Shown here: positions 16,054 to 53,834 of the stretch, piece after piece | Layout of the letters: each line of letters begins with the position of its first letter | Position numbering within the stretch: the stretch's first letter is position 1 | Assembly (NCBI RefSeq): GCF_036588685.1 | Contig: NC_086376.1 | Span: forward strand, 73,201,630 to 73,265,629 | DNA: 64,000 bases | Reading direction: 5' to 3' | Origin: Mytilus trossulus | Taxonomy: Eukaryota | Translations under genes and position numbers: made by a program | The notes under the pieces: model-generated | Seen by the model: the letters and a program-made list of their open reading frames with translations, nothing else | Databases searched by the model: none | Told to the model about the DNA's origin: nothing

Positions 16054-18109
16054 TGAAGAATGTGATATTTAGATGCGTATATTTATCTTCAATAATGGTA
16101 GTAGCATAACTACCCTGTATACTGTAAAATGATATTATGAGACCAGAACCGGCCGAGAATATCAGCTGAGTGTGTTTGGTAACCTGACGTTAACTGTGAT
16201 CGTTATTCAAGATTTGTTTACTGTGTAAATCTTTTAACTGTAAATTAAACCTTAATAGTGCTATAAAATATGTAATGACAGAATGAATGAGACTGAAAGA
16301 TTATTTAAAACTTAGATTTATAATTGTTGTTGAAATAATAAATTAAAATGATTTTGAACATTGTAGTTGTTTCCCTTAAACTGTCTTTACTAATTTGAAC
16401 GCACTATAACGAAAGCCTGTAAGGTTAAATGTACTCATTTCTTATATCATGTGGACCAGAATTAAGTCTTGGAGCTTTTTTTCTCCACCGTTCTTTGTTT
16501 CTAACGAATGCTACTTTTTCGATATACTCGCATATGGTGATGAAAACAACATGATAAACATCATACCAGGTTAGGTTGGAAGTAAAGCATAATACAGTTG
16601 TAACATGCTTCTTTTTACATCAGAAAATGCTATGTTAATATATTGAACTGTGTAATTCAACATTCTTAACATTAATGCATGAAAGGTTTGATGTAACAGA
16701 CCAATTTAAATGTGTTTACCGGTAGACAAATTTGAAGTATCAAATAAGTTCTTAAAACATCTACGTTTCTTTTTCATGAATTTTCTTTAGGATCTCATTT
16801 CCATAAATAAACAGTAAGATGGTGCTGACATTAATTTGTTTATTGGTCTTTTATTTGGATAATGACCAGCATGGAACACAGTCTTTAACATTATTGAATG
16901 ATTGTACACTTAAGTTTGCTTCTAATGTGGTTCCACGGCAACAAAAAACAATAATGTCTTCATTTAACGAGAAATAATGAAAATGAAGTGTCTGGTTCTG
17001 TGGACATAATTAAAACATCACTCAATAACGTAGAACTAATGATCAGGGTCTTTGACGGATCAGCTAATTTCCCGCGTTAAATATGGTCGCCATGTCAGCC
17101 ATTTCATTTGACGTTTTTAATAAAGACGATTAATGACAATGAGGCTGCACACTCCTGTTAATTCATTTACATGCTAGACGACTTAACTTTCCATTATTTA
17201 GACGTCTAGCGACATTACAGAGACAGAGACAGTAGCAAGGCTCAAGTAGATAATATTGATAAATGTCAGATGTAAACAAGGACATTTTGCACGCATTTTA
17301 AATTAAAAGAAGGAAATTGTAAGTTTAGAAATTGCGAATTCGTTCTTTACAATTGAAGACATATGAAGGTTTTATTTAAAGACAACGTATGAACTTTTGG
17401 TATTAGAATTCAAGTTATCGCTCGCTAAAATAATAAGCTTACATTGTGATTATTTACAATTGAATTGATGAGTTTCTTGTCGAAATATACATTTTACCTT
17501 CATATCGTTCTTTTGGCCCAACTTGGTTTTTTTTCTCTCAAGAAAACGAACGCGGATACATTAAGTATATAAAACAATCTTTTTGTTTTGTAAACATAGA
17601 AGTAGTTAACTGCTTTCTTATATCATACTATGTATAAATTGTCACTTTATGTGGTAACGCCGGGTCTAATAAAATCGAAAATTATAATATTTTTTTTCAC
17701 TGCCGACAAGCACATATCGTCTTAGGTTTTTCATCCTTGGTCGGCGGGATAACATCAGATTTGTACTTTGTATGAATAAACGTATAAATACTCTGCAACG
17801 TCCCGGGTCTGTATTTTAGTTGGATTTATTTCTGCTTAGGCCACACCAATTTGATTACTTGTTCGACGGACCCGCGCGCACGTGTTTTTTTCTAAACAGA
17901 AAAAAAATATTTTTTTTATTTTCCCGCTTCCCGCATCCGGAAACAAAATCGTGTCTTTTTCCCGCATCGGTTTTTTCGAAAAAATTTATAAAAACTCAAT
18001 TAAATCGCCAAAGTGTTTTAGTCCACGGCAAATCGCAATGATTTTACTGTTTATATCTAAAACACAGATTTCTTATCACAGTCAAAAACAAATAATTTCA
18101 ACAAGTATC

Positions 18110-21100
18110 ATGCCGATTTTTGTGGTAAGAATTAAGGACTCACAAGGAGGGGAGGTGTTGCCGTCCACGGCAATATCGTTTGCCGGTGGCAGTTTTGTTG
18201 AACTCTTTACGTATTGCGTCGGAATTAAAAAACTCAGCCTTTCATCTGACAATGTAACAGCAGTGTACTTGAAAGAGAGTATGAAGTCAGACCACATAGC
18301 GGCCGATAACGCTGACATGGACGTTTTGGATCTAACCACAGCATTGGGTTGTAAGTTTGTTGAGTATATTATACGTAGATCTGCATGTCCTGAATCTAGC
18401 ACTTGTACTAATATTATAAATAACATTGCTTCAGCTTCAAATAATTTACCCAGTAGGCCTAGCACAAATGCATTTAGTATACTTATGGGGAATAGGTGTA
18501 AAGTTGTTTTACCAGACAAACCTAAGACAGATGGTGCCAAGAAACTTTCTGGCCCTCAAAGACTTTTATGTCATGTAATTGACCTAATGGAGTCCAAAGG
18601 ATGTGGCTGGACTGTAGATTGCCTGGATACAGCTAACTTTGTTGCAAAGTCATTAAGAGACACATTGTGGTACATCGACCATGCCCATAAAAAACTATCA
18701 GATAGTGCTTGTCATGTTCCAAAGATCTTTGATAAATTTCAGGGTTATAATGAGTTCAAAAAGATACATCATCGACCCCCCATCATCACATCTCAAAGAT
18801 TAAATGAGCTCTCTGTTGACTTGTCAAAATCATTATCATTTCCCTCCATTTTATCTTCAAGGAATAAAAAATTCAGTGATGACATAGAACAACTTCTGGA
18901 ATGCATAACTAAATACAAAACACGTTTAGACAAGGACAATATTCAACATAAAGAGTCGTATCAGTCAGGTGACACACCAAGGCGTTCTCTTGAATCCGAT
19001 ACATCTTTGAAATACATACCTCCAACTACTGAGAGTCGTGAGTCCTATGGAACATTACAATCTGACCTTAATAAAATTGATGACTATAGATTTGTTGACC
19101 TTGATAAATATGCACCTGAAGATAGGGTTAAAAGAAGGATGTTCATAAAAAATCTAGAAATTGAAGTACCCATAATGTTGTATAGAATGGCTTATGGTGG
19201 CTCCATTGGAACCTTAAATTTTATATGGAAGGTACCAGAGGAACAGAGTAGTTATCGTGAAACAAGAAATGTCAAAATTGTAAATAAGATAAACGCAACA
19301 TTGCCCAAGTTTTCCACTAGGTCTATGCGCAGAGATTTTTTAAACAGATATTGTAAACTTGTAAAATCACCTAGGTCTGTATTGAGAAATATTTTTTTTG
19401 AGTTAACTGGTTGTGAAGCTGTATCTGAAACCAAGGAGCAAGCAGAAGTTGATGAGCGCGTAACTGAACTATTGCTTAATAGTGATGATTCAAACCTACT
19501 CCTTGATTATAGGACACTGAATGGAAAAGATATTGATACCAAATTTGGGACATTTTTCGAGGAAATGGGTAAATTTTTTGATGAACAGATTCTTCAGGTA
19601 AATGAAAGGCGACGAGGTCAGGAGCTATATTTACCAATGGCTATCTCATTGGAAGATCTAAGAAACCAGATCGTGAAACGATTGCCTAATGACACACCTA
19701 TACCTTGTACAGAAACTATAAGATTACAATTCCAACCAAACAGCGCTTTTCAAAAATCAGCATTAAAATACTCATGTAGATTTAATGTAAAATTCCGTGT
19801 TCAGACAAGACAAGCAAGAGTTTCGCACCCAGATGCAAGATATGTTGCCACATCATTAAAATATCTCAAAGAGTTCTGTGTAAAAAACAGGAAGTATTCC
19901 ACATTTGTTTGTTTAGATGACAAAGCTATTGTTCCGGTTGGAGAACCTGGTGTACCAATTAGCACTGGAGTTCGTGGTCACAACAAAGTGCTTGCTCCAG
20001 CAGATGGTCCGAAATTAGTAGCCACAGATCACGATTTTCATCTTGGTGGCCTTGTTCCCTCTGTGGCTTTTGTAAGCGATATTCCAAAGAACTCAAATGA
20101 TAGCTTCTTCAATGGACATATATATGTTACAACTAAAGATAAAGTTTTCCAAGCATCTACACCTTATCGTCATGCAACTGAGCTAACAAGAATTTTAAGA
20201 GAGAACTACTCTGATGATGATGTCAATCTAGAAACACCCATACTATGTTTAATGACAGATGGAGGTCCTGATCATAGGGTAACTTTCGGGACTGTCCAGC
20301 TATCACTGATTCAGCTATTTATCGCATTAGATCTAGATATGCTCATAGCATTAAGAACAGCACCGAATCACAGCTGGATGAATCCAGCAGAGCGTTGTAT
20401 GTCAATTTTAAATTTATCCCTGCAACATTGTGCACTTTCAAGGAAAGAGATGCCTGAGACCTTTGAAAAAGCAGTTAAACACAAGTCCACTCTTACAGCT
20501 GTCAGAAACTTGGCCTTCATAAAAACTGGGTTCAGAGAGGCTTATGATGAATCTATCAAAAGTGTTATTGATATAGTTAACTCTAGATTTGAGAGGATGA
20601 GATTTAAGGATGATTACCTCACAACTTATAAAGGAGTCACAGAAAACCAGATCATGGATGCTCTTGAAGTGGTTTGCCAGGTCTTGAATAAAGAATTAAA
20701 GGTAGACATGTCTAGTGGAGAATTGCGCAAGGTTAAACAAGTGCAGGTAATTTTTGAAGCGTTTTCTCATAGAGAAGATTTTTATATACCTGTCATTTAC
20801 TAGGGATGCGTTGCAGAAAAATGATAAAACACGGACTAGACTGTCCCTTACATTGTTATTAACAGTGTAAATTTATATTTTATATATATATATATAATAC
20901 TTGATACATGTACAGTATATGAGTAGACCAAATAGTAATTTAATTTATAGATTCTCATCTACATGACCAGAACAAAATGATGCAAGTTGCAGTCTAACTT
21001 TTATTGATTTGGTGCCAATTGCTTTAAATATTGTCATTAATTAAATAGCTTATTAATTGATGATTGAATACAGTTTATTTTCAAATTTGGATGTAAAAAT

Positions 21101-23550
21101 GATGGATAGGGATGAGAATCTACATATTAAATTGATTTTATAGCTTTATGCTTCTTTTAAATAGTATAGTATAACTAAATAAACATGACATTAAATAGCT
21201 AGTGTAATATACCCATATCTTTAGCACTGCATTCATGTATACACTCTTTATGTCATACAATCATATATGTCAGGCATGTGATCCAACATTTTATTCATAT
21301 ATACATTTTATACATGTACTGCATATTATATTGATCACTTCTGTTAAGATTTAAGATGCTTATATATAATACTACTATGCGTTCATACCATATACAGCTC
21401 ATGCAGCTCACACTTCTAATTTACTATCACAACAAACCGCAAAATATGTTATTTGATGTCAATAGTCTAGGATAAGATAATTAAAAAAAACAAAAACAAT
21501 ACTGATACTTGTACTTTAGACTTATGATACTCAATTGTTTTGTTCAATGGCAACATGCATAAAAATACATGAACAAAATAAAAGTTCAATCATCTTTTTT
21601 AAAAAGATGTTCTTGAATTCTCATATTCAACACCATTTTTATTTCTATAAAATTATCATTGAGTTCCCAAGGGTCACCTCTGACTGCTTATACTTATCTA
21701 GATAGGTTAGTTACTCTAAGACTTTAATATGCACATTGTTCATGCTACCTATTTATGTTTCATTTGAATAATATGAGGTTTTTTTCTTTACACAACTTCA
21801 GGATTTTATAGCCCGGCATGGAAGGAGCAGTCATTATGCATTCCAGCTGAAAAAGTGCAATGATTGTCCTTACTGTGAAATCAACCCCCCAAGGATACCA
21901 GAGGACAAATTTCAGGACCTGCATTTCCTACCCAACCCTGTGCCTGGAGAAAACAACCAATATAAGTCTTTCTCAGAGGTCAGTAAAGGATGTACATGTA
22001 GTTAAGAATATGTGACAAGGACTACATTCATGATCTTACATGATTAAAAAAAAAAGTATAAACATGATAAATACATGTCAGAAAGACAGCAATTCACAAC
22101 TTTCAAAGAAAATATATAAGAAACTAAACTATGTGTGATTTGTTTTTCTGGATTAACCTTCATCAGACATACATGTACTAATGGTCAATTCCTATTGACA
22201 CAGCAAACCTAAACTTAATATAGTCTCATGTCAGACAATGTCAATGTTTTAACAACAAAAGAAATAACACAATATGACAGTATTATACTATAAAGTAATC
22301 TGACAAAGGGTTCTTGTATTTATGAATATCCTAAGTAAAATAATTTCATACTGCACCAACTTGTCAATGCATTATTTATCCATGCCAAGAAATTAGCTTT
22401 TCTATGAAGTAAATTCATTTTATATATTACAGCTTTATGGACAAAATACTGGAGAGGAACAACACAGACCGGGGGCGGCACATAAAGCAGAAGAGAATGA
22501 AAATGATAAACAACGTAGAGATTTATTCAAAAACAACAAAGTCCGAGAAGTAATTTTGTGCAGTGAATGCTCAAAACCACGCTGTATTTTCAGTGAAAAG
22601 AAATTGTCCAGGGAACAGGTATTATACCTTTCATACTGCAGGTGTTTTTTTTACATCGATGACACCTATAATATAATCATCAGAATATTTTTATACATTC
22701 TTAAGATGTATAGATGTCCTACAAGGTCTTTACATATACACAATATAAAAAAAAATTGTGGTATGAGACATCTCTTTTCATTGAAGGGACCAAATGACAC
22801 AGAAATTATTAATTGTAGAACACTACAGTCTTCAACAATGAGCAAGGCCCATAACACATAGTCAGTACAAATGTAACTTTACACAAGGTTTTTCAATAAC
22901 CAATTGTATTAAACCATATGTCTTGGTTCTCTGACTTGGTTAAGGTTTTAATGTTTTCATATCTCTGACTCAGTAACAAGGTGACAAAGACTTCAAAGTA
23001 ATTCTTGCATACAAAAAACTGGGTTCGTATTTAATGAAGATTCTCTATGTTTAATATAATGTTTTACATGTTATTTATTCTTAATATTATAGAAGAGATT
23101 TGTTCTTTTTTTAGTATGTGTAAGCTTTACTATGATATACTGGTATTCTTAGGATGTGGTCAATTATAAAGCATTGTGATATTTTCATTTCAATTTTTAT
23201 CATTTCAGGATGAACTGATTCTCAGATTAAAAGAAGATTCCTTTTACACATGTGGTGGGGCTTTGGTCCAAGATGACTCAGAAACTGTTGACATTGTTGT
23301 TAGAGAGGCACTGGCATGTAATTCACCAATTGAAACGACATATTACAGTGCCTCACTAAAGCACTATCTTCCCCCTGTGTGTGTTCATTGCGGAACAGCT
23401 GAGGACCTCCTAGATGATAATAACCCGTATATATCAGCACTCTACGAACAATATTCTGTCGTACGACCTCTATGTGAAGTGTGTAGAAATTCAGGAAAGG
23501 ACACAAAAACATGGGGAAAAAAATTTGTTGGGAAAAAGGCAAAGCATTAA
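18110..23550 (+). CDS. Zator-type DD43E transposase, 4 exons: 18110-20746, 21802-21978, 22433-22618, 23209-23550 (~1,113 aa)
   Basis: Motifs CLDDKAIVPVG, DHDF, TDGGPDH and APNHSWMNPAERCMS; three GT-AG phase-0 introns join in frame; Cys-rich C-terminus. The start could instead be ATG 18038. Confidence 0.85.
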
Positions 23551-23727
23551 CTTTGTAAGCTGGGGCATCCATTGTGTAAATTTGTTTGATATCAGAGATA
23601 AATTAAACAATTGCACTCATTTAGATATTTTTTATTCTGCATGTAAATTATACCATTGGTTTTCCTATTTGAATTGGTTAACACTAGTAATTGTTGGGCC
23701 CTTTTAGTTTGCTGTTTCGTATGAGAC

Positions 23728-23870
23728 TAGGCTTTGGATTGAATGCTGTATGTTGACATATATAATAGTTAACTTTAAATACATTGTATTGTACTTTGTC
23801 TAGGCTTTGGATTGAAGGCTGTATGTTGACAAATAATTGTTAACTTTAAATACATTGTATTGTACTTTGA
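23728..23870. repeat. ~72-bp tandem duplication inside the transposon 3' region
   Basis: CTAGGCTTTGGATTGAA.GCTGTATGTTGACA..TAACTTTAAATACATTGTATTGTACTTT x2; present in all three TE copies. Confidence 0.8.
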
Positions 23871-24562
23871 TTGAGAGTTGTCTCATTGGCACTTGTACTA
23901 CATCCTATTTATATCAACAGGACAAAAAGATAACACCAAAAACAATGGAGACACAGAAAACCAACATTTAATACAAAAAAAATGAAAGTACAACCATTAA
24001 TGAACAGCATGAACCCCAAAAACTGGGTAAACTCAGGTTTTCGGAAAGGATGAACAGTTCCTGCTTCTTGCAAGACACTGCTGTGTTTCTAGCGGCATCA
24101 TGTAGATAATTTATAAGGCAGTTGAAGTTATTCATTTATTCAGTTCAAGATCTGATATCATCATGATCATCAAAAAGTAATGGTATTAAATACAAGAAGT
24201 CATAAATATGCTGAAATAAAATGTGAGGCAGTTGAGAAATTTAGCAAATATCAATGTAAAAGTGGTAATTCTAGTTTCAAACCATTTTATTTTTGTCAGA
24301 ACCTTTGATTTTATGTTTACAAAAAAAAAGTTAATCGCTCGCCTCTACTTTTTAAGCTTCGCCTCAAAAAATTTCAATTTCATTTTTTTTTTATTAAAAT
24401 TTTCAAATCGCTCGCTCGCCCCAATTTCTGGAGTGGAAAAATCCGTAGAACAAGAAATTAAATTGGTGTGGCCTTAGTATCGTTCTAATGAGTTAAGCCT
24501 TTTTCAACTTTTTTTTTATTATATTTTTGAAACTATATTTATTTCGATTTGGAATATCTTCG

Positions 24563-24631
24563 CTAGCCAAAAGTAACGATCAGCTCCCCTCCTCCTGGAG
24601 AGGAGGATAGTGGATCGTAACCCTTGGCTAG
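24563..24631. repeat. 69-nt GC-rich foldback (also at 38882-38950)
   Basis: CTAGCCAA..GTAACGATC..CCTCCTC / GAGGAGG..GATCGTAAC..TTGGCTAG. Confidence 0.6.
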
Positions 24632-25784
24632 AACGCGGGTGCACTCCAGATATAAAAATTGTTTACATGCTACACACAAGATTTTCAAATATTTTCCATA
24701 TACAATTGCAAACTGTTGGAATACAGGTATATAGAAGCTGCACGGTAGATCTAAAATTGTTTACATGTTACAACTCAACCAGCTAGCTGAAGTTCAAACA
24801 TAAAATCATCCCCTTTCCTAGAAATTTGACAAATGTTCTAAGGTCTTCAAGACGGAAGGACAGACTGATGTAGTCGAATGGCGTTAGCAACGCAGGTGCA
24901 AATTGTAATCAGTCAGCTATGAGTTATGGCTCTTTGGTCGACGATCAAAACCCTCCTAGTTGGCAAAAAGTGTTTAAAATTCATAAATTTCAGTAAATTG
25001 TCATATTTTTGATCCATTTTGCAACATTTTTAAAGTATCATTCCCTTCCTTTATGCCTGAAGATATTGAGTTGAACATCTCATCATCTGTTATTCTTTGA
25101 AAGCTTTTCATTATTAAATCTCTATGGTATTTTTTTCTATATCATTCATAATCATTGTATTACATATCTGTGCTGTTATGGGAATAACACTGTTCTCATA
25201 TATACATCACAATTCGAAAACGTTTCTAATTCTTTCTACATTGCTGAATTGAATGTAAAGAAAGTAAGTATCTTTACATATACCTATATACACGTATCTT
25301 AAAAATTAGTAATAACCCGATTTTTATCAAAAATTTCTTAAGTGTTCTTTTTTTTCAAATTCACAAATCAATCAGACAACGTTAACCATAGATAGACTTC
25401 AAAAAGGTATGACAATAATACCAAACGCCAAGGCAAATTAAAAAATAGGGGGAAGGCCATAAAAGTTTACTGACAAAATCAAAAGCAAACGTGACTTTAT
25501 AAACTTTAAAATAAGAATTTACAACTGTCACCGGATTTGTACTTACCGATCCCCGAAATTAAAATACAGTCTGTTAATTGCGTCAATTTAACTTTTGAAC
25601 AGCCGTATACTACAGTTGAATTTATTTACACTAAATCCATCATCGAATGTTGGATGTGTACTGATTGATATTTATGTCTTAGATACATGTTATTGACTTT
25701 GAATTATGCTGTTAGAAACTGCAAGTACTCTCAGACTTGTACTTTGTGTTTCTTTATTGTTTGAGACCGATATATTCTGATGAG

Positions 25785-26058
25785 TTAAGTTTGTACCCAA
25801 CACCTTCACTAAAATTAATTTGGCTCGTTCATAAAATTTCAACAAAGTATTTACTTTGACCCTTTGACAAAAATATAAAAATTTCAAAAAATTTAAACCA
25901 ACCAATTTATCAGAAAAATTACACTGGTTATATAGCAGTTTGACAAACAATAATTTTGATCATTGAGAAGCTTAATATTCCCTCAACAACACAACGGAAT
26001 TAAAACGTTTAGCTGATTTTACAGAGTTATCTCCCTGTAGTGTTAGGTACCACCTTAA
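25785..26058. mobile_element. TTAA-flanked MITE (Kolobok/piggyBac-type target), also at 40104-40377
   Basis: TTAAGTTTGTACCCAACAC / GTGTTAGGTACCACCTTAA; it interrupts the repeat CTGATGAG-TTAA-(T)GCTTTTTCA, which is uninterrupted at ~24487. Confidence 0.7.
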
Positions 26059-26445
26059 TGCTTTTTCACCTGATATTTATAGGTTGTTATCAAATTGTAA
26101 TAAGTTATCAAAGGTACCAGGAATGATTATAATTCAATACGCCAGACGTGCGTTCAGTGACGCTCAGATCAAACAATTATAAAGCCAAACAAGTACAATG
26201 TTGAAGAGCATTTAGGATAAAAAATTCCAAAAGTTGTGCCAAATACGACTTAGGTTGTTCTGAAGCACCACTGTCTCAGAGTTTGTCCAAAGCCATGATG
26301 AGGTAGTTCAGTGGTTTTTGTTGGTTTATGTATGTAATATGTGTTTTTCGTAAATTATTTTGATATAAATTAGACTATACGATATTGTTGAAGGCTTTAA
26401 GATTGTATTGATTGCTTACATTCACTTCATTTGAACTTTGGTGGG

Positions 26446-26804
26446 TAACGTGACGGTACCTAATTTGCACCTATTTTATCATTTTTCTCTCACCTTTTTG
26501 TATGATCTAGACAAAAGTTTCCATGTTGTGTTTTTTATAGATGTATTATTGTTTACTATATAATCACAGCAATTCAATTTTGAATCCATATTGAATCATA
26601 CCCTAATTGCATCCATGTTTAAATTTACACACTTAAAAATTGCATAACAAATGTTATTTCCTTTTCTTCAAATATTTAGAACAATTTGACATTAGTCCAT
26701 GTATATGTATATATAAATATTAAGTGTTAAGTCCCAAATAAAAACGTGTAAGATTTCTACAGCTATTTTTGTGGAATAGGTGCAATTTAGGTACTGTAAC
26801 GTTA
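26446..26804. mobile_element. TA-flanked MITE with ~30-bp TIR, also at 40765-41123
   Basis: TAACGTGACGGTACCTAATTTGCACCTATT / AATAGGTGCAATTTAGGTACTGTAACGTTA; inserted into a copy of the dispersed repeat. Confidence 0.75.
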
Positions 26805-27762
26805 GTTGTATTGTTGGTAACCATACCAAAATCTTCTTAATTTCATAAAGCTTACACAATATCATTGTGAATAAATTACTAATTGTTTTTTGTTGTTATT
26901 GCTATTTTTTGTATTTCTTGTCAAAGATGATGATTAGTGCAGCTTTAAAAATATATTAGAACCAATGATCATGGTTATGTACATTTTATTATAATAAGCA
27001 TAGAAATGTTATCATATGATAGAAAAAAGCTAAGATTTTGGCAATCAAACAAGAAAAGACAAGGTATCACAGCAATTATGATTGCCAAACAAATGCAGTG
27101 ACAAGATAGCATTTGATGACAGAAAAATAAACGCAATTAAGATCATTATATTTCTTGGCCTAAAGATCTTCTAAAAGTGTGGACTGCATCTGTAAAATTT
27201 TTGGACAATGACACTCACTGTTTTCTAATTGCTCTTTTTTTTTAAAGTTGAAATATTGATATATTCCCTCTGTGTAAATCAGATGTAATCTACTCATATA
27301 ATCAAGACTAACGTTTCTTAGATAGAAGAGTATAACATTGCATCGAATACATATACACTAATAGGGTTCAAATTCGACTACAAAAGTCCTTGTCGAAGTC
27401 TTATCGAACTAAAAGTACTGTTCTATTTATAACACGAGTAACCTTGAAATAAGGTTTATTGTAATCCTTCAATAGATTTAAAAGAACAGAATGTTATCGA
27501 ATTAAGTTTACATGTAAAGATCAGGGTTAAATGAAATAGTCCTGATGATGTGCCGTGTAGCAGTTCAATTTTCGTTTTTGAAAAAGTCCATAAAAGTATA
27601 CATATAAATTGCTATCTGGGTTATATTTGGTGTTGGATTTATAGCCATATCTGAAGACCTATAGCTGGATTATAAAGAGACTTTAAGCTATAAAAATAAG
27701 GCATACAATATAAGTATAATTTAATTAATGAGTCATTTAAATTTAATTCAACAATAAAATAT

Positions 27763-29690
27763 TCAAAAACAGACAGGAGACATCATATGATGTTCTCTTT
27801 TACTTTGTCGAATTTTGCTTTTAGCTAACCACTCCAATGGTTTAGATTGGACGGAATTATTTTCGTATGAATTAAAATCTTTGTTTTGAATATCACTACT
27901 ATACTTTCCAGTTTTTAATTCAGTTTTCTCACCAACACAACTGTCTTCAACTAAATGAACCGATTTTTCGACTTTATTCTCATTCTGTGTTCTTTGCAAT
28001 GCGTTGTTATCTTTTATTTGTACTATTGACTCGTGTCCGGTAGCGGCTATTTCAACTTTGTCTGTTTTTGTGTGGCCTTCCGAACAATATAGCATCAATT
28101 TTTCTGGTGAAACAAGATAAAGTTTTGAGTTTACCAAGAACTCACGTAAGTTTATAGCACTTTTTGTACTTCGTAGTGCTGCGTTGGTCGAAGATTTTTG
28201 TGAAATCGATACTATATCGTTAGAATCGATATCGTCCGAGTGACAAATTCGGGAAATCACATTGTCTTTTATTTCTGAGTTGTTGTTATCGTTTGGGTGT
28301 TTTTCTTTATTTACATCATCTAAACTTGACCATCGTTTCGTTTGTTTTAAATCTTTGACCATCGATTGTTTATTCAATTTAGAAAATCGATCAATACATG
28401 ATTTATCTAGATGACTGCTTTTCCTTCTTATTTCATTTTTATTTTCATCCTTATAAGAAGCCCTAAGTTGAGATATTCCATTAAAACTGGACCTTCTTTT
28501 CATATATTGCGAGTCTTGAAACACTGAATTCTCAAATTTCACGCTTCTGTTTAATTCGTTAACATCCATTTTATTCTCTTTTTCCGTATATGTCGAATAT
28601 TCATCGCATCCATAAGGAAACATTTGTGCTACATCATGTAAACTAGACCTTCGTCTTACACAAGACAAATTTTGATGTACTTTATTTTTATCTGAATTGT
28701 GCATCACGGTATAGTTCTCTTTTCGGCCAATTCTTGTTTCTGTATTTTCTTCTTGCGTACATCGTTTGACTGATTTAACGTTAACATTATCAGATTTTGC
28801 AGTGAATCTTAGCTTTTCAACTTTCTTTGAAATTGAATGGTCCAAAGTACTTTTGTCTTTATCGTTATTGAATGGACTGCTTTCTTGTGGACTGCAAGAA
28901 TCATCAAACAAATCTGAAACATGATAAGTGTTTTAATGGACGTACTAGAATTTGATTTGTTTTTTCAATGATTAAAGACAACGTAATACACATATATACA
29001 TATTTATCATACGTTTAGTAGTAAATACAGTAGTTTTGCATATTTGATAAATAGCCTGCTGTTTAATCCATATCGCGCAACTTTGATGCGCACCCTTTAT
29101 CGCATACCCTTTATCACACCCCTACCCTTTATCGCATACCCTAAGGGCCCTTGGGCTGATATTGATGTCTCGGGATGATACAACATATGATACGGATTTG
29201 CCATGTATTATTCCCTATATAAAGAATCAATTTATGCACGTTTTAACAACTGGATCTCAATGTCGTAAACTAAGAATAAAATAGTTTAACCTATTTTGAT
29301 ACTTTTTTCTAGCAATCAATGTCTTTGATATAAATTTATATAAAAATGTTATATATTAGATTGAAACTTCTGATATTGTTTTTTTTAGTATACTGTATGT
29401 TCATAATTCATTTTCATTGTAACACTAAGAAAAGGTCCACAAAATTAACCCTAATGTTAGTTAATTCACAATCTACAAAATACAAGCATTATCTCCATCA
29501 ACTATATACCTTCATTTTCTTCTGTAATTGTTTCCCCGAACCTTTCGAGAGCTGAGTACAAGTTGTATGGTCTAGAGGAATTTTGAAGATCTGATATCAC
29601 GAAACCGTCATCAGATTCTTCATCAAAGAAACTTTTTCCATTGGAATGTGGGATGGTTCCTTGAAGTGCATTTCTCTTGTTAAAATACAT
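27763..29690 (-). CDS. Uncharacterised, probably disordered Ser/Lys/Asn-rich protein (~443 aa), copy 1; coding exons 29690-29510 and 28913-27763
   Basis: ATG at 29690; donor G|GTATAT and acceptor TTTCAG| join in frame (phase 1); probable 5'UTR intron 30717-29723 (GTAAGT..TTTGCAG); colinear similarity to the ORF at 60346-61200. Confidence 0.7.
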
Positions 29691-31406: not shown

Positions 31407-31438
<32 letters not shown>

Positions 31439-31464
31439 TCTTTTCTAGATATAGGATTTTGATT

Positions 31465-41700: not shown

Positions 41701-42081
41701 AAAAGTCCTTGTCGAAGTCTTATCGAACTAAAAGTACTGTTCTATTTATAACACGAGTAACCTTGAAATAAGGTTTATTGTAATCCTTCAATAGATTTAA
41801 AAGAACAGAATGTTATCGAATTAAGTTTACATGTAAAGATCAGGGTTAAATGAAATAGTCCTGATGATGTGCCGTGTAGCAGTTCAATTTTCGTTTTTGA
41901 AAAAGTCCATAAAAGTATACATATAAATTGCTATCTGGGTTATATTTGGTGTTGGATTTATAGCCATATCTGAAGACCTATAGCTGGATTATAAAGAGAC
42001 TTTAAGCTATAAAAATAAGGCATACAATATAAGTATAATTTAATTAATGAGTCATTTAAATTTAATTCAACAATAAAATAT

Positions 42082-44009
42082 TCAAAAACAGACAGGAGAC
42101 ATCATATGATGTTCTCTTTTACTTTGTCGAATTTTGCTTTTAGCTAACCACTCCAATGGTTTAGATTGGACGGAATTATTTTCGTATGAATTAAAATCTT
42201 TGTTTTGAATATCACTACTATACTTTCCAGTTTTTAATTCAGTTTTCTCACCAACACAACTGTCTTCAACTAAATGAACCGATTTTTCGACTTTATTCTC
42301 ATTCTGTGTTCTTTGCAATGCGTTGTTATCTTTTATTTGTACTATTGACTCGTGTCCGGTAGCGGCTATTTCAACTTTGTCTGTTTTTGTGTGGCCTTCC
42401 GAACAATATAGCATCAATTTTTCTGGTGAAACAAGATAAAGTTTTGAGTTTACCAAGAACTCACGTAAGTTTATAGCACTTTTTGTACTTCGTAGTGCTG
42501 CGTTGGTCGAAGATTTTTGTGAAATCGATACTATATCGTTAGAATCGATATCGTCCGAGTGACAAATTCGGGAAATCACATTGTCTTTTATTTCTGAGTT
42601 GTTGTTATCGTTTGGGTGTTTTTCTTTATTTACATCATCTAAACTTGACCATCGTTTCGTTTGTTTTAAATCTTTGACCATCGATTGTTTATTCAATTTA
42701 GAAAATCGATCAATACATGATTTATCTAGATGACTGCTTTTCCTTCTTATTTCATTTTTATTTTCATCCTTATAAGAAGCCCTAAGTTGAGATATTCCAT
42801 TAAAACTGGACCTTCTTTTCATATATTGCGAGTCTTGAAACACTGAATTCTCAAATTTCACGCTTCTGTTTAATTCGTTAACATCCATTTTATTCTCTTT
42901 TTCCGTATATGTCGAATATTCATCGCATCCATAAGGAAACATTTGTGCTACATCATGTAAACTAGACCTTCGTCTTACACAAGACAAATTTTGATGTACT
43001 TTATTTTTATCTGAATTGTGCATCACGGTATAGTTCTCTTTTCGGCCAATTCTTGTTTCTGTATTTTCTTCTTGCGTACATCGTTTGACTGATTTAACGT
43101 TAACATTATCAGATTTTGCAGTGAATCTTAGCTTTTCAACTTTCTTTGAAATTGAATGGTCCAAAGTACTTTTGTCTTTATCGTTATTGAATGGACTGCT
43201 TTCTTGTGGACTGCAAGAATCATCAAACAAATCTGAAACATGATAAGTGTTTTAATGGACGTACTAGAATTTGATTTGTTTTTTCAATGATTAAAGACAA
43301 CGTAATACACATATATACATATTTATCATACGTTTAGTAGTAAATACAGTAGTTTTGCATATTTGATAAATAGCCTGCTGTTTAATCCATATCGCGCAAC
43401 TTTGATGCGCACCCTTTATCGCATACCCTTTATCACACCCCTACCCTTTATCGCATACCCTAAGGGCCCTTGGGCTGATATTGATGTCTCGGGATGATAC
43501 AACATATGATACGGATTTGCCATGTATTATTCCCTATATAAAGAATCAATTTATGCACGTTTTAACAACTGGATCTCAATGTCGTAAACTAAGAATAAAA
43601 TAGTTTAACCTATTTTGATACTTTTTTCTAGCAATCAATGTCTTTGATATAAATTTATATAAAAATGTTATATATTAGATTGAAACTTCTGATATTGTTT
43701 TTTTTAGTATACTGTATGTTCATAATTCATTTTCATTGTAACACTAAGAAAAGGTCCACAAAATTAACCCTAATGTTAGTTAATTCACAATCTACAAAAT
43801 ACAAGCATTATCTCCATCAACTATATACCTTCATTTTCTTCTGTAATTGTTTCCCCGAACCTTTCGAGAGCTGAGTACAAGTTGTATGGTCTAGAGGAAT
43901 TTTGAAGATCTGATATCACGAAACCGTCATCAGATTCTTCATCAAAGAAACTTTTTCCATTGGAATGTGGGATGGTTCCTTGAAGTGCATTTCTCTTGTT
44001 AAAATACAT
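42082..44009 (-). CDS. Uncharacterised protein copy 2; coding exons 44009-43829 and 43232-42082
   Basis: Identical to 27763-29690 at +14,319. Confidence 0.7.
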
Positions 44010-45725
44010 CGTAACAGTTCACAAGCTGGTTCAAAATAAGTCTGCAAATATAAAATTTTCTATGAACACTACAAAAAGCAAGATTGAACTTGCTCTTTAA
44101 CTTGAACTGAAGACTGTCTTTCAAGTTTGTAATTTGAAATTCAAAATTAGACGTCCTAATATTACTTATCCAAATTCATACGTCGATAAACCGATGACAA
44201 AACACGAAAACAAAACAAATAGACAAATAACAATCCACAAAACCGAAAGTCTGAGCAACACATACATAACCACGACAACTTGAACAGATTTCAAGTGCTT
44301 CAGAAGGATAGAGAGATCCTGATCAACATGAGTAAATGACTACACAACCTACTGACTGAATGCAGACTATAGAGACGTTTAAAAGAATTGCTGGTCATCA
44401 ATTGGAGTAAACAAAGAGCATAAATTATCATTTTCATCGCCTATGACATGTGTCATTTAGGATTGAAAAGAGCAGTAGCAGTGTCTGTAAGTTGAGAACA
44501 AAGAAGCAACAAGTGTTGTGGCTAAATAGAATATTGTACGCAAAAAGACTTAATAACTTGTGTTCTCCCTACATATATATAGCTATGGCGTTGTCAGTTT
44601 ATTTCGTTCTATCAGTTTGACTGCACCTCTGGTATCTTTCGCCCCTCTTTTTTTGAATTTTTTGTCACATGATATTAGGCAGACACCATCTGAAAGGTCG
44701 ACCTCATGGTTATGATGTTACAACGTACGAGTTCTCCTTTCCAAATTCGGTACTGGCGACACAAATAAGTGGCCTCTTAATCATCGTTATCAATTATTTA
44801 AAAATCAACACCGAGTCTGTTTTAAATATAAATAGTTAGTGGAGTCGTACATGGGTCAATTTCAAAAACTATTCTTATTTTGAGGCAGATCCTCATATCA
44901 AACTCGAAATTGTGTACAAATTCAAACATACTACGCATAAAATTTAAAAACGGGTAAAAACGTATTATTGTTAACGCATAGTTAATTTATGACTTTTTAA
45001 TTTCTGATACTAATAATTAAAATTCATTTCACTTACCAAAGTTATGGTTAACAATCATATTCATGTATATAAAAAATGATTGGTGGTTTCCTCAACAGGT
45101 GAATATTGTCCCAAAACAAAAACCAAAATGTCCCACAGAGTTTCGACCCAACACAAATATAATAAAAGTCATATTGTAAATATGGTTAAATTGTGGCATG
45201 ATCACATTTAACCTTGCATAACCTTTAGATTGTTTACTAAACATGACATGTTTTTACGATCTAATTATATTCTGAAATAACAAATGGATAAAGGTCGTCA
45301 TTGCTATACAACATGTCTCGGTACAACCAGAAGTTTGTTAGACAGGAATTTACGGAATTGTCTATTTTTGTCCTTCAGTATTCCAAAATATTCAACATCC
45401 CCAATTGCGCATGTTTTTAGACAACAAGTCGAAGGTTTGCAACTAGTCCAGAATAGTTTTTATTTTTTAAAGTTGTTAGATGTTAGATGTTAGAAATTGT
45501 TTTGAAAGATTTTACTGAACAAACAATCAAGTTGTGAAAGTGTGAACACCCCAAAACTAAGCTTCTTACACGTTTGTTAACATCGGTCCATGTAATTTAT
45601 TTCAAAACTTTAATCCTACATTATAACAACAAAATATAAATGTAAATTTAAAATGCTTGTTGCCATGTCTTCAATATTATCAATAGATTTGCATTAAAAA
45701 CATGTTCTATAATATTTAAACCTAC

Positions 45726-45757
<32 letters not shown>

Positions 45758-46476
45758 TCTTTTCTAGATATAGGATTTTGATTGATTTGGTTTTTTTATG
45801 TTTTAACGCCACTTTGGAGACCCGCATTTAGGCTATTTCGTGGCGTCCAGTTTTTATTAGTGAAGAAGCCGGAGTGTCCTGAGAAAACCACCGTACTTCG
45901 ATAGGAAAACTTGATATAGCGGAAGATGTGGTATGGGTGCCAATGAGACAACTCTCAATCCAAGTGACAATTTATAGAGGTAAATAATTATAGGTCATGG
46001 TACGGTCTTCAACACGGAGCAAAGGTTAACATCGAACAAGAAGCTATAAAGGGTCACAAAATTACTAGTGTAAAACCATTTAAACGGGGAAACATACGGT
46101 CTAATCTATATAAAAAAACGAAAAACACTTATGAACTACATAAAACATATTCGACATTATACTACAACGGATTTGCAGGTGTTAATCTAAACGTGTATAA
46201 GAGAGTTGGTCAATTTTTGTTGATAAAATAATGTTAATCCTTTTCAGATAGCAATAAAAGTCAATAAGAAATAACATTTCTTTTTATGATAAACCATGAA
46301 AAGAAAGAAGATGGTATCATTACCGAGATGATTGTTTATTTCAATATAATTTAGATCACCTTGAAACTTGAGGTAAAGTGGTATCGATTTTTTTGTGAAA
46401 ACTTTGCAAAAATGTAGTCACTGCATATGGATAACAAATACTTTGTCTCATTTCTGGGTTTATTTGATTGTTATAA

Positions 46477-49400
46477 GGCCACACCAATTTAATTTCTTGT
46501 TCTACGGATTTTTCCACTCCAGAAATTGGGGCGAGCGAGCGATTTGAAAATTTTAATAAAAAAAAAATGAAATTGAAATTTTTTGAGGCGAAGCTTAAAA
46601 AGTAGAGGCGAGCGATTAACTTTTTTTTTGTAAACATAAAATCAAAGGTTCTGACAAAAATAAAATGGTTTGAAACTAGAATTACCACTTTTACATTGAT
46701 ATTTGCTAAATTTCTCAACTGCCTCACATTTTATTTCAGCATATTTATGACTTCTTGTATTTAATACCATTACTTTTTGATGATCATGATGATATCAGAT
46801 CTTGAACTGAATAAATGAATAACTTCAACTGCCTTATAAATTATCTACATGATGCCGCTAGAAACACAGCAGTGTCTTGCAAGAAGCAGGAACTGTTCAT
46901 CCTTTCCGAAAACCTGAGTTTACCCAGTTTTTGGGGTTCATGCTGTTCATTAATGGTTGTACTTTCATTTTTTTTGTATTAAATGTTGGTTTTCTGTGTC
47001 TCCATTGTTTTTGGTGTTATCTTTTTGTCCTGTTGATATAAATAGGATGTAGTACAAGTGCCAATGAGACAACTCTCAATCAAAGTACAATACAATGTAT
47101 TTAAAGTTAACAATTATTTGTCAACATACAGCCTTCAATCCAAAGCCTAGACAAAGTACAATACAATGTATTTAAAGTTAACTATTATATATGTCAACAT
47201 ACAGCATTCAATCCAAAGCCTAGTCTCATACGAAACAGCAAACTAAAAGGGCCCAACAATTACTAGTGTTAACCAATTCAAATAGGAAAACCAATGGTAT
47301 AATTTACATGCAGAATAAAAAATATCTAAATGAGTGCAATTGTTTAATTTATCTCTGATATCAAACAAATTTACACAATGGATGCCCCAGCTTACAAAGT
47401 TAATGCTTTGCCTTTTTCCCAACAAATTTTTTTCCCCATGTTTTTGTGTCCTTTCCTGAATTTCTACACACTTCACATAGAGGTCGTACGACAGAATATT
47501 GTTCGTAGAGTGCTGATATATACGGGTTATTATCATCTAGGAGGTCCTCAGCTGTTCCGCAATGAACACACACAGGGGGAAGATAGTGCTTTAGTGAGGC
47601 ACTGTAATATGTCGTTTCAATTGGTGAATTACATGCCAGTGCCTCTCTAACAACAATGTCAACAGTTTCTGAGTCATCTTGGACCAAAGCCCCACCACAT
47701 GTGTAAAAGGAATCTTCTTTTAATCTGAGAATCAGTTCATCCTGAAATGATAAAAATTGAAATGAAAATATCACAATGCTTTATAATTGACCACATCCTA
47801 AGAATACCAGTATATCATAGTAAAGCTTACACATACTAAAAAAAGAACAAATCTCTTCTATAATATTAAGAATAAATAACATGTAAAACATTATATTAAA
47901 CATAGAGAATCTTCATTAAATACGAACCCAGTTTTTTGTATGCAAGAATTACTTTGAAGTCTTTGTCACCTTGTTACTGAGTCAGAGATATGAAAACATT
48001 AAAACCTTAACCAAGTCAGAGAACCAAGACATATGGTTTAATACAATTGGTTATTGAAAAACCTTGTGTAAAGTTACATTTGTACTGACTATGTGTTATG
48101 GGCCTTGCTCATTGTTGAAGACTGTAGTGTTCTACAATTAATAATTTCTGTGTCATTTGGTCCCTTCAATGAAAAGAGATGTCTCATACCACAATTTTTT
48201 TTTATATTGTGTATATGTAAAGACCTTGTAGGACATCTATACATCTTAAGAATGTATAAAAATATTCTGATGATTATATTATAGGTGTCATCGATGTAAA
48301 AAAAACACCTGCAGTATGAAAGGTATAATACCTGTTCCCTGGACAATTTCTTTTCACTGAAAATACAGCGTGGTTTTGAGCATTCACTGCACAAAATTAC
48401 TTCTCGGACTTTGTTGTTTTTGAATAAATCTCTACGTTGTTTATCATTTTCATTCTCTTCTGCTTTATGTGCCGCCCCCGGTCTGTGTTGTTCCTCTCCA
48501 GTATTTTGTCCATAAAGCTGTAATATATAAAATGAATTTACTTCATAGAAAAGCTAATTTCTTGGCATGGATAAATAATGCATTGACAAGTTGGTGCAGT
48601 ATGAAATTATTTTACTTAGGATATTCATAAATACAAGAACCCTTTGTCAGATTACTTTATAGTATAATACTGTCATATTGTGTTATTTCTTTTGTTGTTA
48701 AAACATTGACATTGTCTGACATGAGACTATATTAAGTTTAGGTTTGCTGTGTCAATAGGAATTGACCATTAGTACATGTATGTCTGATGAAGGTTAATCC
48801 AGAAAAACAAATCACACATAGTTTAGTTTCTTATATATTTTCTTTGAAAGTTGTGAATTGCTGTCTTTCTGACATGTATTTATCATGTTTATACTTTTTT
48901 TTTTAATCATGTAAGATCATGAATGTAGTCCTTGTCACATATTCTTAACTACATGTACATCCTTTACTGACCTCTGAGAAAGACTTATATTGGTTGTTTT
49001 CTCCAGGCACAGGGTTGGGTAGGAAATGCAGGTCCTGAAATTTGTCCTCTGGTATCCTTGGGGGGTTGATTTCACAGTAAGGACAATCATTGCACTTTTT
49101 CAGCTGGAATGCATAATGACTGCTCCTTCCATGCCGGGCTATAAAATCCTGAAGTTGTGTAAAGAAAAAAACCTCATATTATTCAAATGAAACATAAATA
49201 GGTAGCATGAACAATGTGCATATTAAAGTCTTAGAGTAACTAACCTATCTAGATAAGTATAAGCAGTCAGAGGTGACCCTTGGGAACTCAATGATAATTT
49301 TATAGAAATAAAAATGGTGTTGAATATGAGAATTCAAGAACATCTTTTTAAAAAAGATGATTGAACTTTTATTTTGTTCATGTATTTTTATGCATGTTGC

Positions 49401-52400
49401 CATTGAACAAAACAATTGAGTATCATAAGTCTAAAGTACAAGTATCAGTATTGTTTTTGTTTTTTTTAATTATCTTATCCTAGACTATTGACATCAAATA
49501 ACATATTTTGCGGTTTGTTGTGATAGTAAATTAGAAGTGTGAGCTGCATGAGCTGTATATGGTATGAACGCATAGTAGTATTATATATAAGCATCTTAAA
49601 TCTTAACAGAAGTGATCAATATAATATGCAGTACATGTATAAAATGTATATATGAATAAAATGTTGGATCACATGCCTGACATATATGATTGTATGACAT
49701 AAAGAGTGTATACATGAATGCAGTGCTAAAGATATGGGTATATTACACTAGCTATTTAATGTCATGTTTATTTAGTTATACTATACTATTTAAAAGAAGC
49801 ATAAAGCTATAAAATCAATTTAATATGTAGATTCTCATCCCTATCCATCATTTTTACATCCAAATTTGAAAATAAACTGTATTCAATCATCAATTAATAA
49901 GCTATTTAATTAATGACAATATTTAAAGCAATTGGCACCAAATCAATAAAAGTTAGACTGCAACTTGCATCATTTTGTTCTGGTCATGTAGATGAGAATC
50001 TATAAATTAAATTACTATTTGGTCTACTCATATACTGTACATGTATCAAGTATTATATATATATATATAAAATATAAATTTACACTGTTAATAACAATGT
50101 AAGGGACAGTCTAGTCCGTGTTTTATCATTTTTCTGCAACGCATCCCTAGTAAATGACAGGTATATAAAAATCTTCTCTATGAGAAAACGCTTCAAAAAT
50201 TACCTGCACTTGTTTAACCTTGCGCAATTCTCCACTAGACATGTCTACCTTTAATTCTTTATTCAAGACCTGGCAAACCACTTCAAGAGCATCCATGATC
50301 TGGTTTTCTGTGACTCCTTTATAAGTTGTGAGGTAATCATCCTTAAATCTCATCCTCTCAAATCTAGAGTTAACTATATCAATAACACTTTTGATAGATT
50401 CATCATAAGCCTCTCTGAACCCAGTTTTTATGAAGGCCAAGTTTCTGACAGCTGTAAGAGTGGACTTGTGTTTAACTGCTTTTTCAAAGGTCTCAGGCAT
50501 CTCTTTCCTTGAAAGTGCACAATGTTGCAGGGATAAATTTAAAATTGACATACAACGCTCTGCTGGATTCATCCAGCTGTGATTCGGTGCTGTTCTTAAT
50601 GCTATGAGCATATCTAGATCTAATGCGATAAATAGCTGAATCAGTGATAGCTGGACAGTCCCGAAAGTTACCCTATGATCAGGACCTCCATCTGTCATTA
50701 AACATAGTATGGGTGTTTCTAGATTGACATCATCATCAGAGTAGTTCTCTCTTAAAATTCTTGTTAGCTCAGTTGCATGACGATAAGGTGTAGATGCTTG
50801 GAAAACTTTATCTTTAGTTGTAACATATATATGTCCATTGAAGAAGCTATCATTTGAGTTCTTTGGAATATCGCTTACAAAAGCCACAGAGGGAACAAGG
50901 CCACCAAGATGAAAATCGTGATCTGTGGCTACTAATTTCGGACCATCTGCTGGAGCAAGCACTTTGTTGTGACCACGAACTCCAGTGCTAATTGGTACAC
51001 CAGGTTCTCCAACCGGAACAATAGCTTTGTCATCTAAACAAACAAATGTGGAATACTTCCTGTTTTTTACACAGAACTCTTTGAGATATTTTAATGATGT
51101 GGCAACATATCTTGCATCTGGGTGCGAAACTCTTGCTTGTCTTGTCTGAACACGGAATTTTACATTAAATCTACATGAGTATTTTAATGCTGATTTTTGA
51201 AAAGCGCTGTTTGGTTGGAATTGTAATCTTATAGTTTCTGTACAAGGTATAGGTGTGTCATTAGGCAATCGTTTCACGATCTGGTTTCTTAGATCTTCCA
51301 ATGAGATAGCCATTGGTAAATATAGCTCCTGACCTCGTCGCCTTTCATTTACCTGAAGAATCTGTTCATCAAAAAATTTACCCATTTCCTCGAAAAATGT
51401 CCCAAATTTGGTATCAATATCTTTTCCATTCAGTGTCCTATAATCAAGGAGTAGGTTTGAATCATCACTATTAAGCAATAGTTCAGTTACGCGCTCATCA
51501 ACTTCTGCTTGCTCCTTGGTTTCAGATACAGCTTCACAACCAGTTAACTCAAAAAAAATATTTCTCAATACAGACCTAGGTGATTTTACAAGTTTACAAT
51601 ATCTGTTTAAAAAATCTCTGCGCATAGACCTAGTGGAAAACTTGGGCAATGTTGCGTTTATCTTATTTACAATTTTGACATTTCTTGTTTCACGATAACT
51701 ACTCTGTTCCTCTGGTACCTTCCATATAAAATTTAAGGTTCCAATGGAGCCACCATAAGCCATTCTATACAACATTATGGGTACTTCAATTTCTAGATTT
51801 TTTATGAACATCCTTCTTTTAACCCTATCTTCAGGTGCATATTTATCAAGGTCAACAAATCTATAGTCATCAATTTTATTAAGGTCAGATTGTAATGTTC
51901 CATAGGACTCACGACTCTCAGTAGTTGGAGGTATGTATTTCAAAGATGTATCGGATTCAAGAGAACGCCTTGGTGTGTCACCTGACTGATACGACTCTTT
52001 ATGTTGAATATTGTCCTTGTCTAAACGTGTTTTGTATTTAGTTATGCATTCCAGAAGTTGTTCTATGTCATCACTGAATTTTTTATTCCTTGAAGATAAA
52101 ATGGAGGGAAATGATAATGATTTTGACAAGTCAACAGAGAGCTCATTTAATCTTTGAGATGTGATGATGGGGGGTCGATGATGTATCTTTTTGAACTCAT
52201 TATAACCCTGAAATTTATCAAAGATCTTTGGAACATGACAAGCACTATCTGATAGTTTTTTATGGGCATGGTCGATGTACCACAATGTGTCTCTTAATGA
52301 CTTTGCAACAAAGTTAGCTGTATCCAGGCAATCTACAGTCCAGCCACATCCTTTGGACTCCATTAGGTCAATTACATGACATAAAAGTCTTTGAGGGCCA

Positions 52401-53111
52401 GAAAGTTTCTTGGCACCATCTGTCTTAGGTTTGTCTGGTAAAACAACTTTACACCTATTCCCCATAAGTATACTAAATGCATTTGTGCTAGGCCTACTGG
52501 GTAAATTATTTGAAGCTGAAGCAATGTTATTTATAATATTAGTACAAGTGCTAGATTCAGGACATGCAGATCTACGTATAATATACTCAACAAACTTACA
52601 ACCCAATGCTGTGGTTAGATCCAAAACGTCCATGTCAGCGTTATCGGCCGCTATGTGGTCTGACTTCATACTCTCTTTCAAGTACACTGCTGTTACATTG
52701 TCAGATGAAAGGCTGAGTTTTTTAATTCCGACGCAATACGTAAAGAGTTCAACAAAACTGCCACCGGCAAACGATATTGCCGTGGACGGCAACACCTCCC
52801 CTCCTTGTGAGTCCTTAATTCTTACCACAAAAATCGGCATGATACTTGTTGAAATTATTTGTTTTTGACTGTGATAAGAAATCTGTGTTTTAGATATAAA
52901 CAGTAAAATCATTGCGATTTGCCGTGGACTAAAACACTTTGGCGATTTAATTGAGTTTTTATAAATTTTTTCGAAAAAACCGATGCGGGAAAAAGACACG
53001 ATTTTGTTTCCGGATGCGGGAAGCGGGAAAATAAAAAAAATATTTTTTTTCTGTTTAGAAAAAAACACGTGCGCGCGGGTCCGTCGAACAAGTAATCAAA
53101 TTGGTGTGGCC
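46477..53111 (-). mobile_element. Zator-like transposon copy 3, inverted, TSD TAA
   Basis: Reverse complement of copy 1 (pos' = 70950 - pos); TAA at 46474-76 and 53112-14. Confidence 0.9.
47400..52840 (-). CDS. Zator-type transposase copy 3; exons 52840-50204, 49148-48972, 48517-48332, 47741-47400
   Basis: Translation identical to copy 1. Confidence 0.85.
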
Positions 53112-53834
53112 TAAAAGTAATTTTACTAATAATTTGAATGTGACGACATAACGAAAGAAAAGGTGTCGATTAAAATACGTATGTGAAAGGAATATATAAT
53201 CGTTTACCTCACCTCAATTACAATATAAAAAAGAAGATGATATAAAGTTACTTTTGAGTTATTACACATGCAATTGTATACAAAATTAAACTATTTGTAC
53301 TAACCTTGTTACCAGCCGTTGAGAAGTAATTTTGGTTATATTCCTTGGATAAACACTTTACCTTGTTATATAGCAGTTCAAGGCTAGATTATTTGGACAA
53401 TGGAAAACACCTGAAGGCCGTCGACACTGCCCAGTGGTGACCTTATCACAAGGTATACATATTTGTCATACGTATGTATACAAACTTATCATCAATTCAA
53501 GCTAAATATAAAAGAATATTTTGTTCACTCTGTTTAACCAAACCTTGAGTATATTTCGAGAAACTATATATTAAAGTCATACATCTATGAAATAAAGTTA
53601 CAGGAATGTAACATTGAAATCTTATATGGATTATGATAGAAAATTGGATAGTGTTCAAGTCAATTGAATTGTAGTATTTATGGATTAAAAATCATTATGA
53701 TATGTCCTAATCATTCATGCAATTTTTTAACATTTTAAAGAAGTTTCAAAACCAAGAACTGCCTCTGCGTGGTGGCTTAATTATTATCAATTAAACGAGT
53801 TATCAGAACATGTTGATCATTTGATATAATATAA

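Follow-up and report, generated by a model that had tools for sequence, protein, structure and literature searches.

Very probable tandem duplication of a host gene and a Zator-type transposon at an inverted transposon pair in Mytilus trossulus

Architecture of the locus

The stretch of DNA analysed here, referred to as the window (64,000 nucleotides), lies on chromosome 4 of Mytilus trossulus (G000:C4:73201630-73265629) in an assembly of 1.3 Gb and 541 contigs; it is free of any N, and its assignment to this organism is backed by exact protein matches. It carries three copies of a DNA transposon of Zator type, which encodes the transposase gene LOC134715936, and two copies of a host segment, B, which holds the gene LOC134715929, in the layout A-TE(+)-B-TE(+)-B-TE(-)-C, where TE stands for the transposable element with its orientation in brackets and A and C for the outer flanks (Table 1). 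All three element copies are 6,635 bp long and identical. Positions 17838-32171 and 32157-46490, at an offset of 14,319, agree over 14,334 nt with zero mismatches and zero gaps, and a repeat search returned complementary arms at 100% identity for 17836-24476 with 46474-53114 and for 32148-38795 with 46474-53121. When the whole assembly was searched, segment B matched at two places only, both within this locus. Because there are zero differences across the 14,334 nt shared by the two units and none among the four element copies of the assembly (the fourth lies outside the window), all events that shaped the locus would be very recent. The two repeats are thus read as a tandem duplication of a 14,319-bp unit, consisting of an apparently active Zator-type transposon and LOC134715929, which is very probably real and happened very recently.

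Table 1. Elements, host segments, genes and junction features of the duplicated locus (positions are those of the window).
Feature	Position	Strand	Evidence
TTA target-site duplication to the left of element copy 1 (end of flank A)	17836..17838		Read directly; pairs with 24474-24476
Element copy 1, 6,635 bp, Zator-type, TTA/TTA flanks	17839..24473	+	100% identical to copies 2, 3 and 4
Transposase gene of copy 1, LOC134715936	18107..23547	+	tblastn, including an Ostrea homologue; bivalve homologues; relatives match PF07592
Transposase exons, copy 1	about 18107 (or 18485)-20746, 21724-21981, 22367-22618, 23179-23547	+	tblastn
Host segment B, copy 1, 7,678 bp	24477..32154		Identical to 38796-46473
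Host gene LOC134715929, copy 1, full 443-aa coding sequence, exons 29690-29505 and 28914-27766	27766..29690	-	tblastn at 100%, plus orthologues
Exchange interval (15-mer), new junction of B-end and left element end	32157..32171	+	Bounds of the identity run; junction letters
Element copy 2, mismatched flanks: TAA left (B-end type), TTA right (B-start type)	32158..38792	+	Direct reading
Host segment B, copy 2	38796..46473		Identity to copy 1 of B
Host gene LOC134715929, copy 2, exons 44009-43824 and 43233-42085	42085..44009	-	tblastn
Element copy 3, inverted, TAA/TAA flanks at 46474-46476 and 53112-53114	46477..53111	-	Repeat search; direct reading

Junctions and exchange interval

Copy 1 is joined to its surroundings as ...ctgc TTA / GGCC...GGCC / TTA gtatc... 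and copy 3, in its own orientation, as ...actt TTA / ... / TTA taaca..., which corresponds to TAA/TAA on the plus strand. Copy 2 reads ...tgtta TAA / GGCC...GGCC / TTA gtatc..., and its flanks are therefore hybrid: the B-end flank is that of copy 3 and the B-start flank that of copy 1. Matching TTA or TAA flanks, that is, a 3-bp target-site duplication, were present in 9/9 independent insertions examined (copies 1, 3 and 4, an internally deleted copy on C7 and five non-autonomous copies of 1.45 kb on C5, C1, C12, C8 and C3), which leaves copy 2 as the sole insertion with mismatched flanks among the ten family insertions examined.

The left and right ends of the element share a 14-nt perfect inverted repeat, GGCCACACCAATTT, which together with the last A of the target duplication forms the 15-mer AGGCCACACCAATTT; over a longer span the terminal repeats agree at 29/32 positions. 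In the window the 15-mer has 6 matches, all at the six element ends, where 0.01 would be expected. The first position at which left and right ends differ is 32172, where G marks the left type and A the right type, and since the end types part there, the bounds of the identity run confine the join between the end of B and copy 2 to the 15 bases given in Table 1. The join is clean, with no filler bases, an identity of 15 nt at both breakpoints and an exact copy, which are the marks of a microhomology-associated duplication. Between the end of A and the end of B no homology above chance was found (local alignment score 18 vs 16.6 +/- 2.8 for shuffled sequences), and extended homology of the flanks at the breakpoints was rejected as an explanation since the alignment is no better than that of the shuffles. 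A search of JGI metagenome contigs with a 41-nt pattern across the new junction gave no match and is uninformative. An earlier interpretation of the window made without database searches (the sequence-only reading) had assigned TTA/TTA to copy 1, TAA/TAA to copy 3 and hybrid flanks to copy 2, and had placed the join inside a 15-mer common to directly oriented ends; direct reading of the junctions bears out the one, and the interval 32157-32171 the other.

Read depth and the reality of the duplication

The read evidence consists of Logan contigs, which lose branches beside high-copy repeats, and the depths given are contig means of a single run, X1, which holds 83% of the sampled words and of whose 46,000 pieces only a handful are listed. 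X1 contigs of B identical to the reference have depths of 49.9-50.7, while a second allele of B, about 5% divergent (12 differences in 260 nt), has depths of 22.5-26.3 at the same places; a contig of 5,663 nt that matches the element without differences has a depth of 107.6. Reference B, divergent B and element thus stand in a ratio of 2 : 1 : about 4.3, with an element-to-B ratio of 2.15. A haploid depth near 24-25 implies two copies of the reference B, one B on the other haplotype and about four elements. These ratios fit the assembled structure, which has two B and four elements on one haplotype, whereas mis-threading of the assembly predicts one and three. The sequence-only reading had singled out the depth of B as a check, a single-copy depth speaking for an artefact, and about 50 for the reference B compared with about 22-26 for the divergent allele, beside 107.6 for the element, points the other way. 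The one X1 contig among those listed that crosses 32157 has both right-end letters and thus represents the copy-3 junction; its mean depth of 48.1, compared with 50-50.7 in pure B contigs, is what would be expected if part of the B-ends continue into the right-end form, although this is a weak indication.

If the assembly were at fault, the true haplotype would be A-TE(+)-B-TE(-)-C with the 14.3-kb unit threaded twice, which we regard as distinctly unlikely. Such an error would also produce the 100% identity seen between the units and among all element copies, the junction between B-end and left end occurs in no X1 contig among those listed (which, with branches pruned, is not evidence of absence), and X1 may be the source data of the assembly itself. 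However, the depth of reference B is double that of the other allele, and the element-to-B ratio of 2.15 compares with 2.0 expected of a real duplication and 3.0 expected otherwise. Furthermore, left and right ends agree over no more than 15 nt, which is of no use to an overlap assembler; it would need reads carrying the junction itself to build the join of B-end and left end. A retained haplotig is ruled out, since the other haplotype is about 5% different in B. In another run, X2, contig 12 parts from the reference at 32156, and its next 158 letters are unlike those of the window, which would fit an empty site 2 in another mussel. The patterns of empty sites 1 and 2 had no match in this assembly, as expected of an assembly of one haplotype.

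The transposon family and its superfamily

The assembly contains four full element copies, all identical and all within 192 kb of chromosome 4. The fourth (G000:C4:73406472-73413106), found 141 kb beyond the downstream edge of the window, is inserted into an array of a 59-bp satellite and has a TAA/TAA duplication. The internally deleted relative on C7 is 1.2 kb long with 90-94% identity, and more than 700 candidate non-autonomous relatives of ~1.45 kb have the same terminal repeats and match the element at about 84% over about 160/240 nt of its ends. The transposase gene LOC134715936 is intact, comprises four exons and has homologues with 50-68% identity in oysters, scallops, pearl oysters and clams. 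Judging from the four identical copies within 192 kb and the intact transposase gene, the element looks active, and as its copies cluster on chromosome 4 it evidently hops locally.

A few further observations concern the element and its relatives. A 71-bp unit is repeated twice at 23727-23869 (and at 38046-38188), in the 3' part of the element past the last transposase exon. At window position 33603, X1 also contains an element variant with one extra G at a depth of 22, about one haploid copy, compared with 107.6 for the reference form, which suggests a fifth, slightly different copy outside this assembly, perhaps on the other haplotype. Two runs labelled as other organisms, X3 and X7, contain the element across window positions 32182-34657 at about 98-99% identity, and in X7 it has about four times the depth of B-like contigs; the family is shared across Mytilus taxa and possibly active there.

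Zator was defined by its similarity to ISAzo13, and 3-bp duplications occur in both (PMC10045372; PMC7386202). The nine independent insertions described above show duplications of this length. The transposase of the window itself had no match in Pfam at E values up to 10, and PF07592 had none in a six-frame search of the genome. A family profile search returned 7,236 representatives, and among 46 family members, all of which match the profile at E <= 1e-83, four match PF07592 (ISAzo13 / TP36; best E 1.8e-7). PF07592 is the only Pfam family matched by more than three of the 46, zf-CW being matched by three. A Zator transposase is expected to have a DDE/D catalytic core of RNase H-like fold, close to the IS630-Tc1-mariner group. 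Residues D478/D479, D592 and E636 show little or no variation among these 46 relatives and form a candidate DDE/D core. The AlphaFold model of the transposase is mediocre (pLDDT 61), and the matches found with it by Foldseek are weak, all of them RNase H-like, including TnsB and the mariner transposase Mos1 (probability 0.97, E 8e-4). A profile search against the sequences of the PDB returned nothing for the transposase and a protein atlas search unnamed clusters only. The Zator label, proposed in the sequence-only reading, is thereby supported indirectly, and it appears reasonable by way of a transitive link that combines the 3-bp duplications with the relatives that match PF07592.

The duplicated host gene and its surroundings

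Both coding exons of LOC134715929 lie inside B, together with 2.5 kb upstream and 3.3 kb downstream of them, and the earlier proposal that a whole host gene had been duplicated holds in respect of the coding sequence. The product is a low-complexity protein of 443 aa that is conserved in M. edulis (85%) and M. californianus (66%) and had no match in a direct scan against Pfam. A distant paralogue of its C-terminal part is present in flank C at 60349-60795 on the minus strand, with 25-29% identity over about 173 aa, and the locus may be a small gene-family cluster. Segment B also contains two short repeats, at 30159-30492 and 31495-31828, whose k-mer depth is enormous in each of the four runs, reaching 1.4 million in X1, and which have hundreds of genome matches at about 90%; they are very abundant elements resembling miniature inverted-repeat transposable elements. 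Elsewhere in the window, positions 4567-6093 are occupied by a 39-bp minisatellite with 39 copies at 97% identity and a G+C content above that of its surroundings, which is open in several frames on both strands and probably non-coding.

Mechanism of the duplication

We consider it likely, with moderate confidence, that the duplication arose by ectopic exchange or break repair between the directly oriented ends of two inverted element copies. We infer an ancestor of the form A-TE(+)-B-TE(-)-C, which would have been produced by two ordinary local insertions at TTA/TAA sites. Since the two parents lie in opposite orientations, recombination between their bodies inverts B and gives no direct duplication, a point that the sequence-only reading had made and that stands. 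The sole directly oriented homology between the parents is the terminal repeat (15 perfect bases, or 29/32), the ends concerned being 14.3 kb apart. Were the left end of copy 1 to exchange, inside the 15-mer, with the right end of its inverted counterpart on a sister chromatid or a homologue, the outcome would be A-TE-B-TE-B-TE(-)-C and, as the reciprocal product, the deletion A-TE(-)-C.

Such an exchange would most probably have begun with a double-strand break at the left end of copy 1, for which the element's own transposase, cutting there, would be the obvious source. The 3' tail, which would consist of terminal-repeat sequence, would then anneal at an ectopic site, the identical repeat at the right end of the inverted element on the sister chromatid, and from there prime synthesis back across B and the element as far as A, where the new strand would re-anneal. 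The same product would result if replication had switched templates in the 15-mer or if an unequal crossover had taken place there. Copying from another copy of a repeat during repair is an established model for duplications in flies with a transposon at the junction (PMC3276153). Microhomology-guided gap filling at elements with terminal inverted repeats has been documented in animals (PMC8277862), and the repair route proposed here matches it. Besides the points on the reads raised above, three considerations weigh against this account: the two-element ancestor and the reciprocal deletion are not among the structures observed, 15 nt is short for homologous recombination, and no sequence feature separates homology-guided repair from an exchange catalysed by the transposase, because all routes place the join in the same 15 bases.

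An exchange catalysed by the transposase is the possibility that must be weighed most closely against this, although we hold it to be rather unlikely. It could have taken two forms, both of which yield the observed structure plus the reciprocal deletion. In the first, the left end of copy 1 would have been synapsed with the right end of copy 3 on another chromatid, and after cutting both would have been religated with swapped partners, their terminal sequences being the same. In the second, a left end and a right end of copy 1, taken from two sister chromatids, would have acted together, in the manner of the hybrid element insertion known from the P element, and inserted at the TAA beside copy 3 on another chromatid carrying copy 1. 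The join is compatible with the boundary between target duplication and terminal repeat, where the enzyme cuts, and the element is evidently active and hops locally. Moreover, the repeats start precisely with the transposon, the flanks of the first copy match and the middle copy shares one of them, which is the signature known from maize (PMC3744419), and hybrid element insertion leaves duplications beside a retained P element (summarised in PMC2775673). Yet the first form requires a ligation of flank to end that is not normal transposase chemistry, and the second requires the exact 3-bp site beside copy 3 as its target, a coincidence that the homology model is spared. The event is marked by no new target-site duplication, and, to our knowledge, nothing has been established about the cleavage chemistry of Zator transposases, which we count against this route as well. 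The three-copy arrangement, with an element at both boundaries and a further one between them, is in addition ascribed to recombination rather than transposition (PMC3744419). The more general notion that an active Zator transposase brings left ends and directly oriented right ends of different chromatids into synapsis and exchanges the flanks, and that this is a recurrent source of whole-gene duplication and deletion in mussels, is more doubtful and can be put forward only tentatively.

It is highly improbable that copy 2 inserted independently into a B-B tandem that already existed, or that reversed-ends transposition of the Ac type gave rise to the duplication. Local hopping makes repeated insertions nearby plausible, but an independent insertion should have matching flanks, as 9/9 others have; those of copy 2 read TAA and TTA, and the surrounding 14 kb are free of mutations. 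Copies 1 and 2 would, in addition, both have had to strike the same base of B. Reversed-ends transposition, one of the Ac-type schemes of alternative transposition that the sequence-only reading had offered, does not fit the geometry and is excluded by it: it would act on the pair of right ends facing each other across B and create new junctions at right ends only, when the junction here is at a left end, and the new target site that would follow from the published model (PMC3744419) is lacking. Other candidates were likewise rejected, namely an inversion through recombination of the element bodies, which yields no junction of B-end and left end, a composite transposition of TE-B-TE, which would leave four copies, and sister-chromatid transposition of the Ac type, which gives a chromatid bridge and an inverted duplication.

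Comparison with known systems

Tandem duplication mediated by transposons is well known as a class, and it is the geometry at this locus that is unusual. Non-allelic homologous recombination between transposon copies is exemplified by the inversions that Galileo has generated in Drosophila buzzatii (PMC2775673) and by classical duplications in which transposons mark the junction and both boundaries, the pattern assigned to this process (PMC3744419). The Mytilus locus resembles such events in that two parent insertions, each with its own target duplication, have given a product copy with exchanged flanks, and in that three copies bracket and separate the duplicated segments. Unlike in those events, the parents are inverted and their 6.6-kb bodies would give an inversion, and the directly oriented homology amounts to only 15 bases (or 29/32), far under the usual length of hundreds of bases.

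The tandem direct duplications caused by Ac/Ds in maize have been attributed to reversed-ends transposition (Zhang, Zuo and Peterson 2013, PMC3744419) and to re-replication (PMC4270019). They share with the present case the presence of exactly two repeats, each starting precisely with the transposon, a first copy whose flanks match and a middle copy with just one of those flanks, and an active element whose copies lie close together. In contrast to maize, the new junction involves an outer (left) end and not the facing ends, it borders on the site that copy 3 already occupied, and neither a target site nor a target duplication was newly created. The distal boundary has an element copy, the third, where reversed-ends transposition leaves one breakpoint without an element, and the superfamily is Zator and not hAT.

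Hybrid element insertion of the P element in Drosophila (summarised in PMC2775673 and PMC3744419) offers a third comparison, since flanking DNA is duplicated right beside the retained element (TE-B-TE-B) and the participating ends belong to different chromatids, but at this locus it would require insertion exactly into the 3-bp site beside an inverted copy, and its reciprocal product would be expected to show the same newly made target duplication. Microhomology-type duplications at class II elements are similar in that the tandem copy is very young and exact, microhomology is found at the breakpoint, copying is local and a break made by the element is plausible. They differ in that the microhomology is here the element's own terminal repeat, common to two inverted copies, and in that the copied unit is a whole element with a whole gene instead of a fragment captured inside an element. 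In the literature searched, no earlier description was found of an exchange between the terminal repeats of an inverted pair that gives a tandem duplication.

Significance

The locus offers a natural case, at zero divergence, in which a DNA transposon appears to have duplicated a complete animal gene and the breakpoints are still unblurred. Inverted copies are normally expected to give inversions, and it is terminal repeats reading in the same direction that would here have given a tandem duplication. Taken alone this is one event only, and what it says at the level of mechanism carries the same moderate confidence as the proposed exchange between element ends. If the terminal repeats served as the site of exchange, any pair of inverted elements with terminal inverted repeats lying near each other would be a latent cassette for the duplication or deletion of the DNA between them, the elements included, and, if recurrent, events of this kind could feed the massive gene presence/absence variation of mussels.

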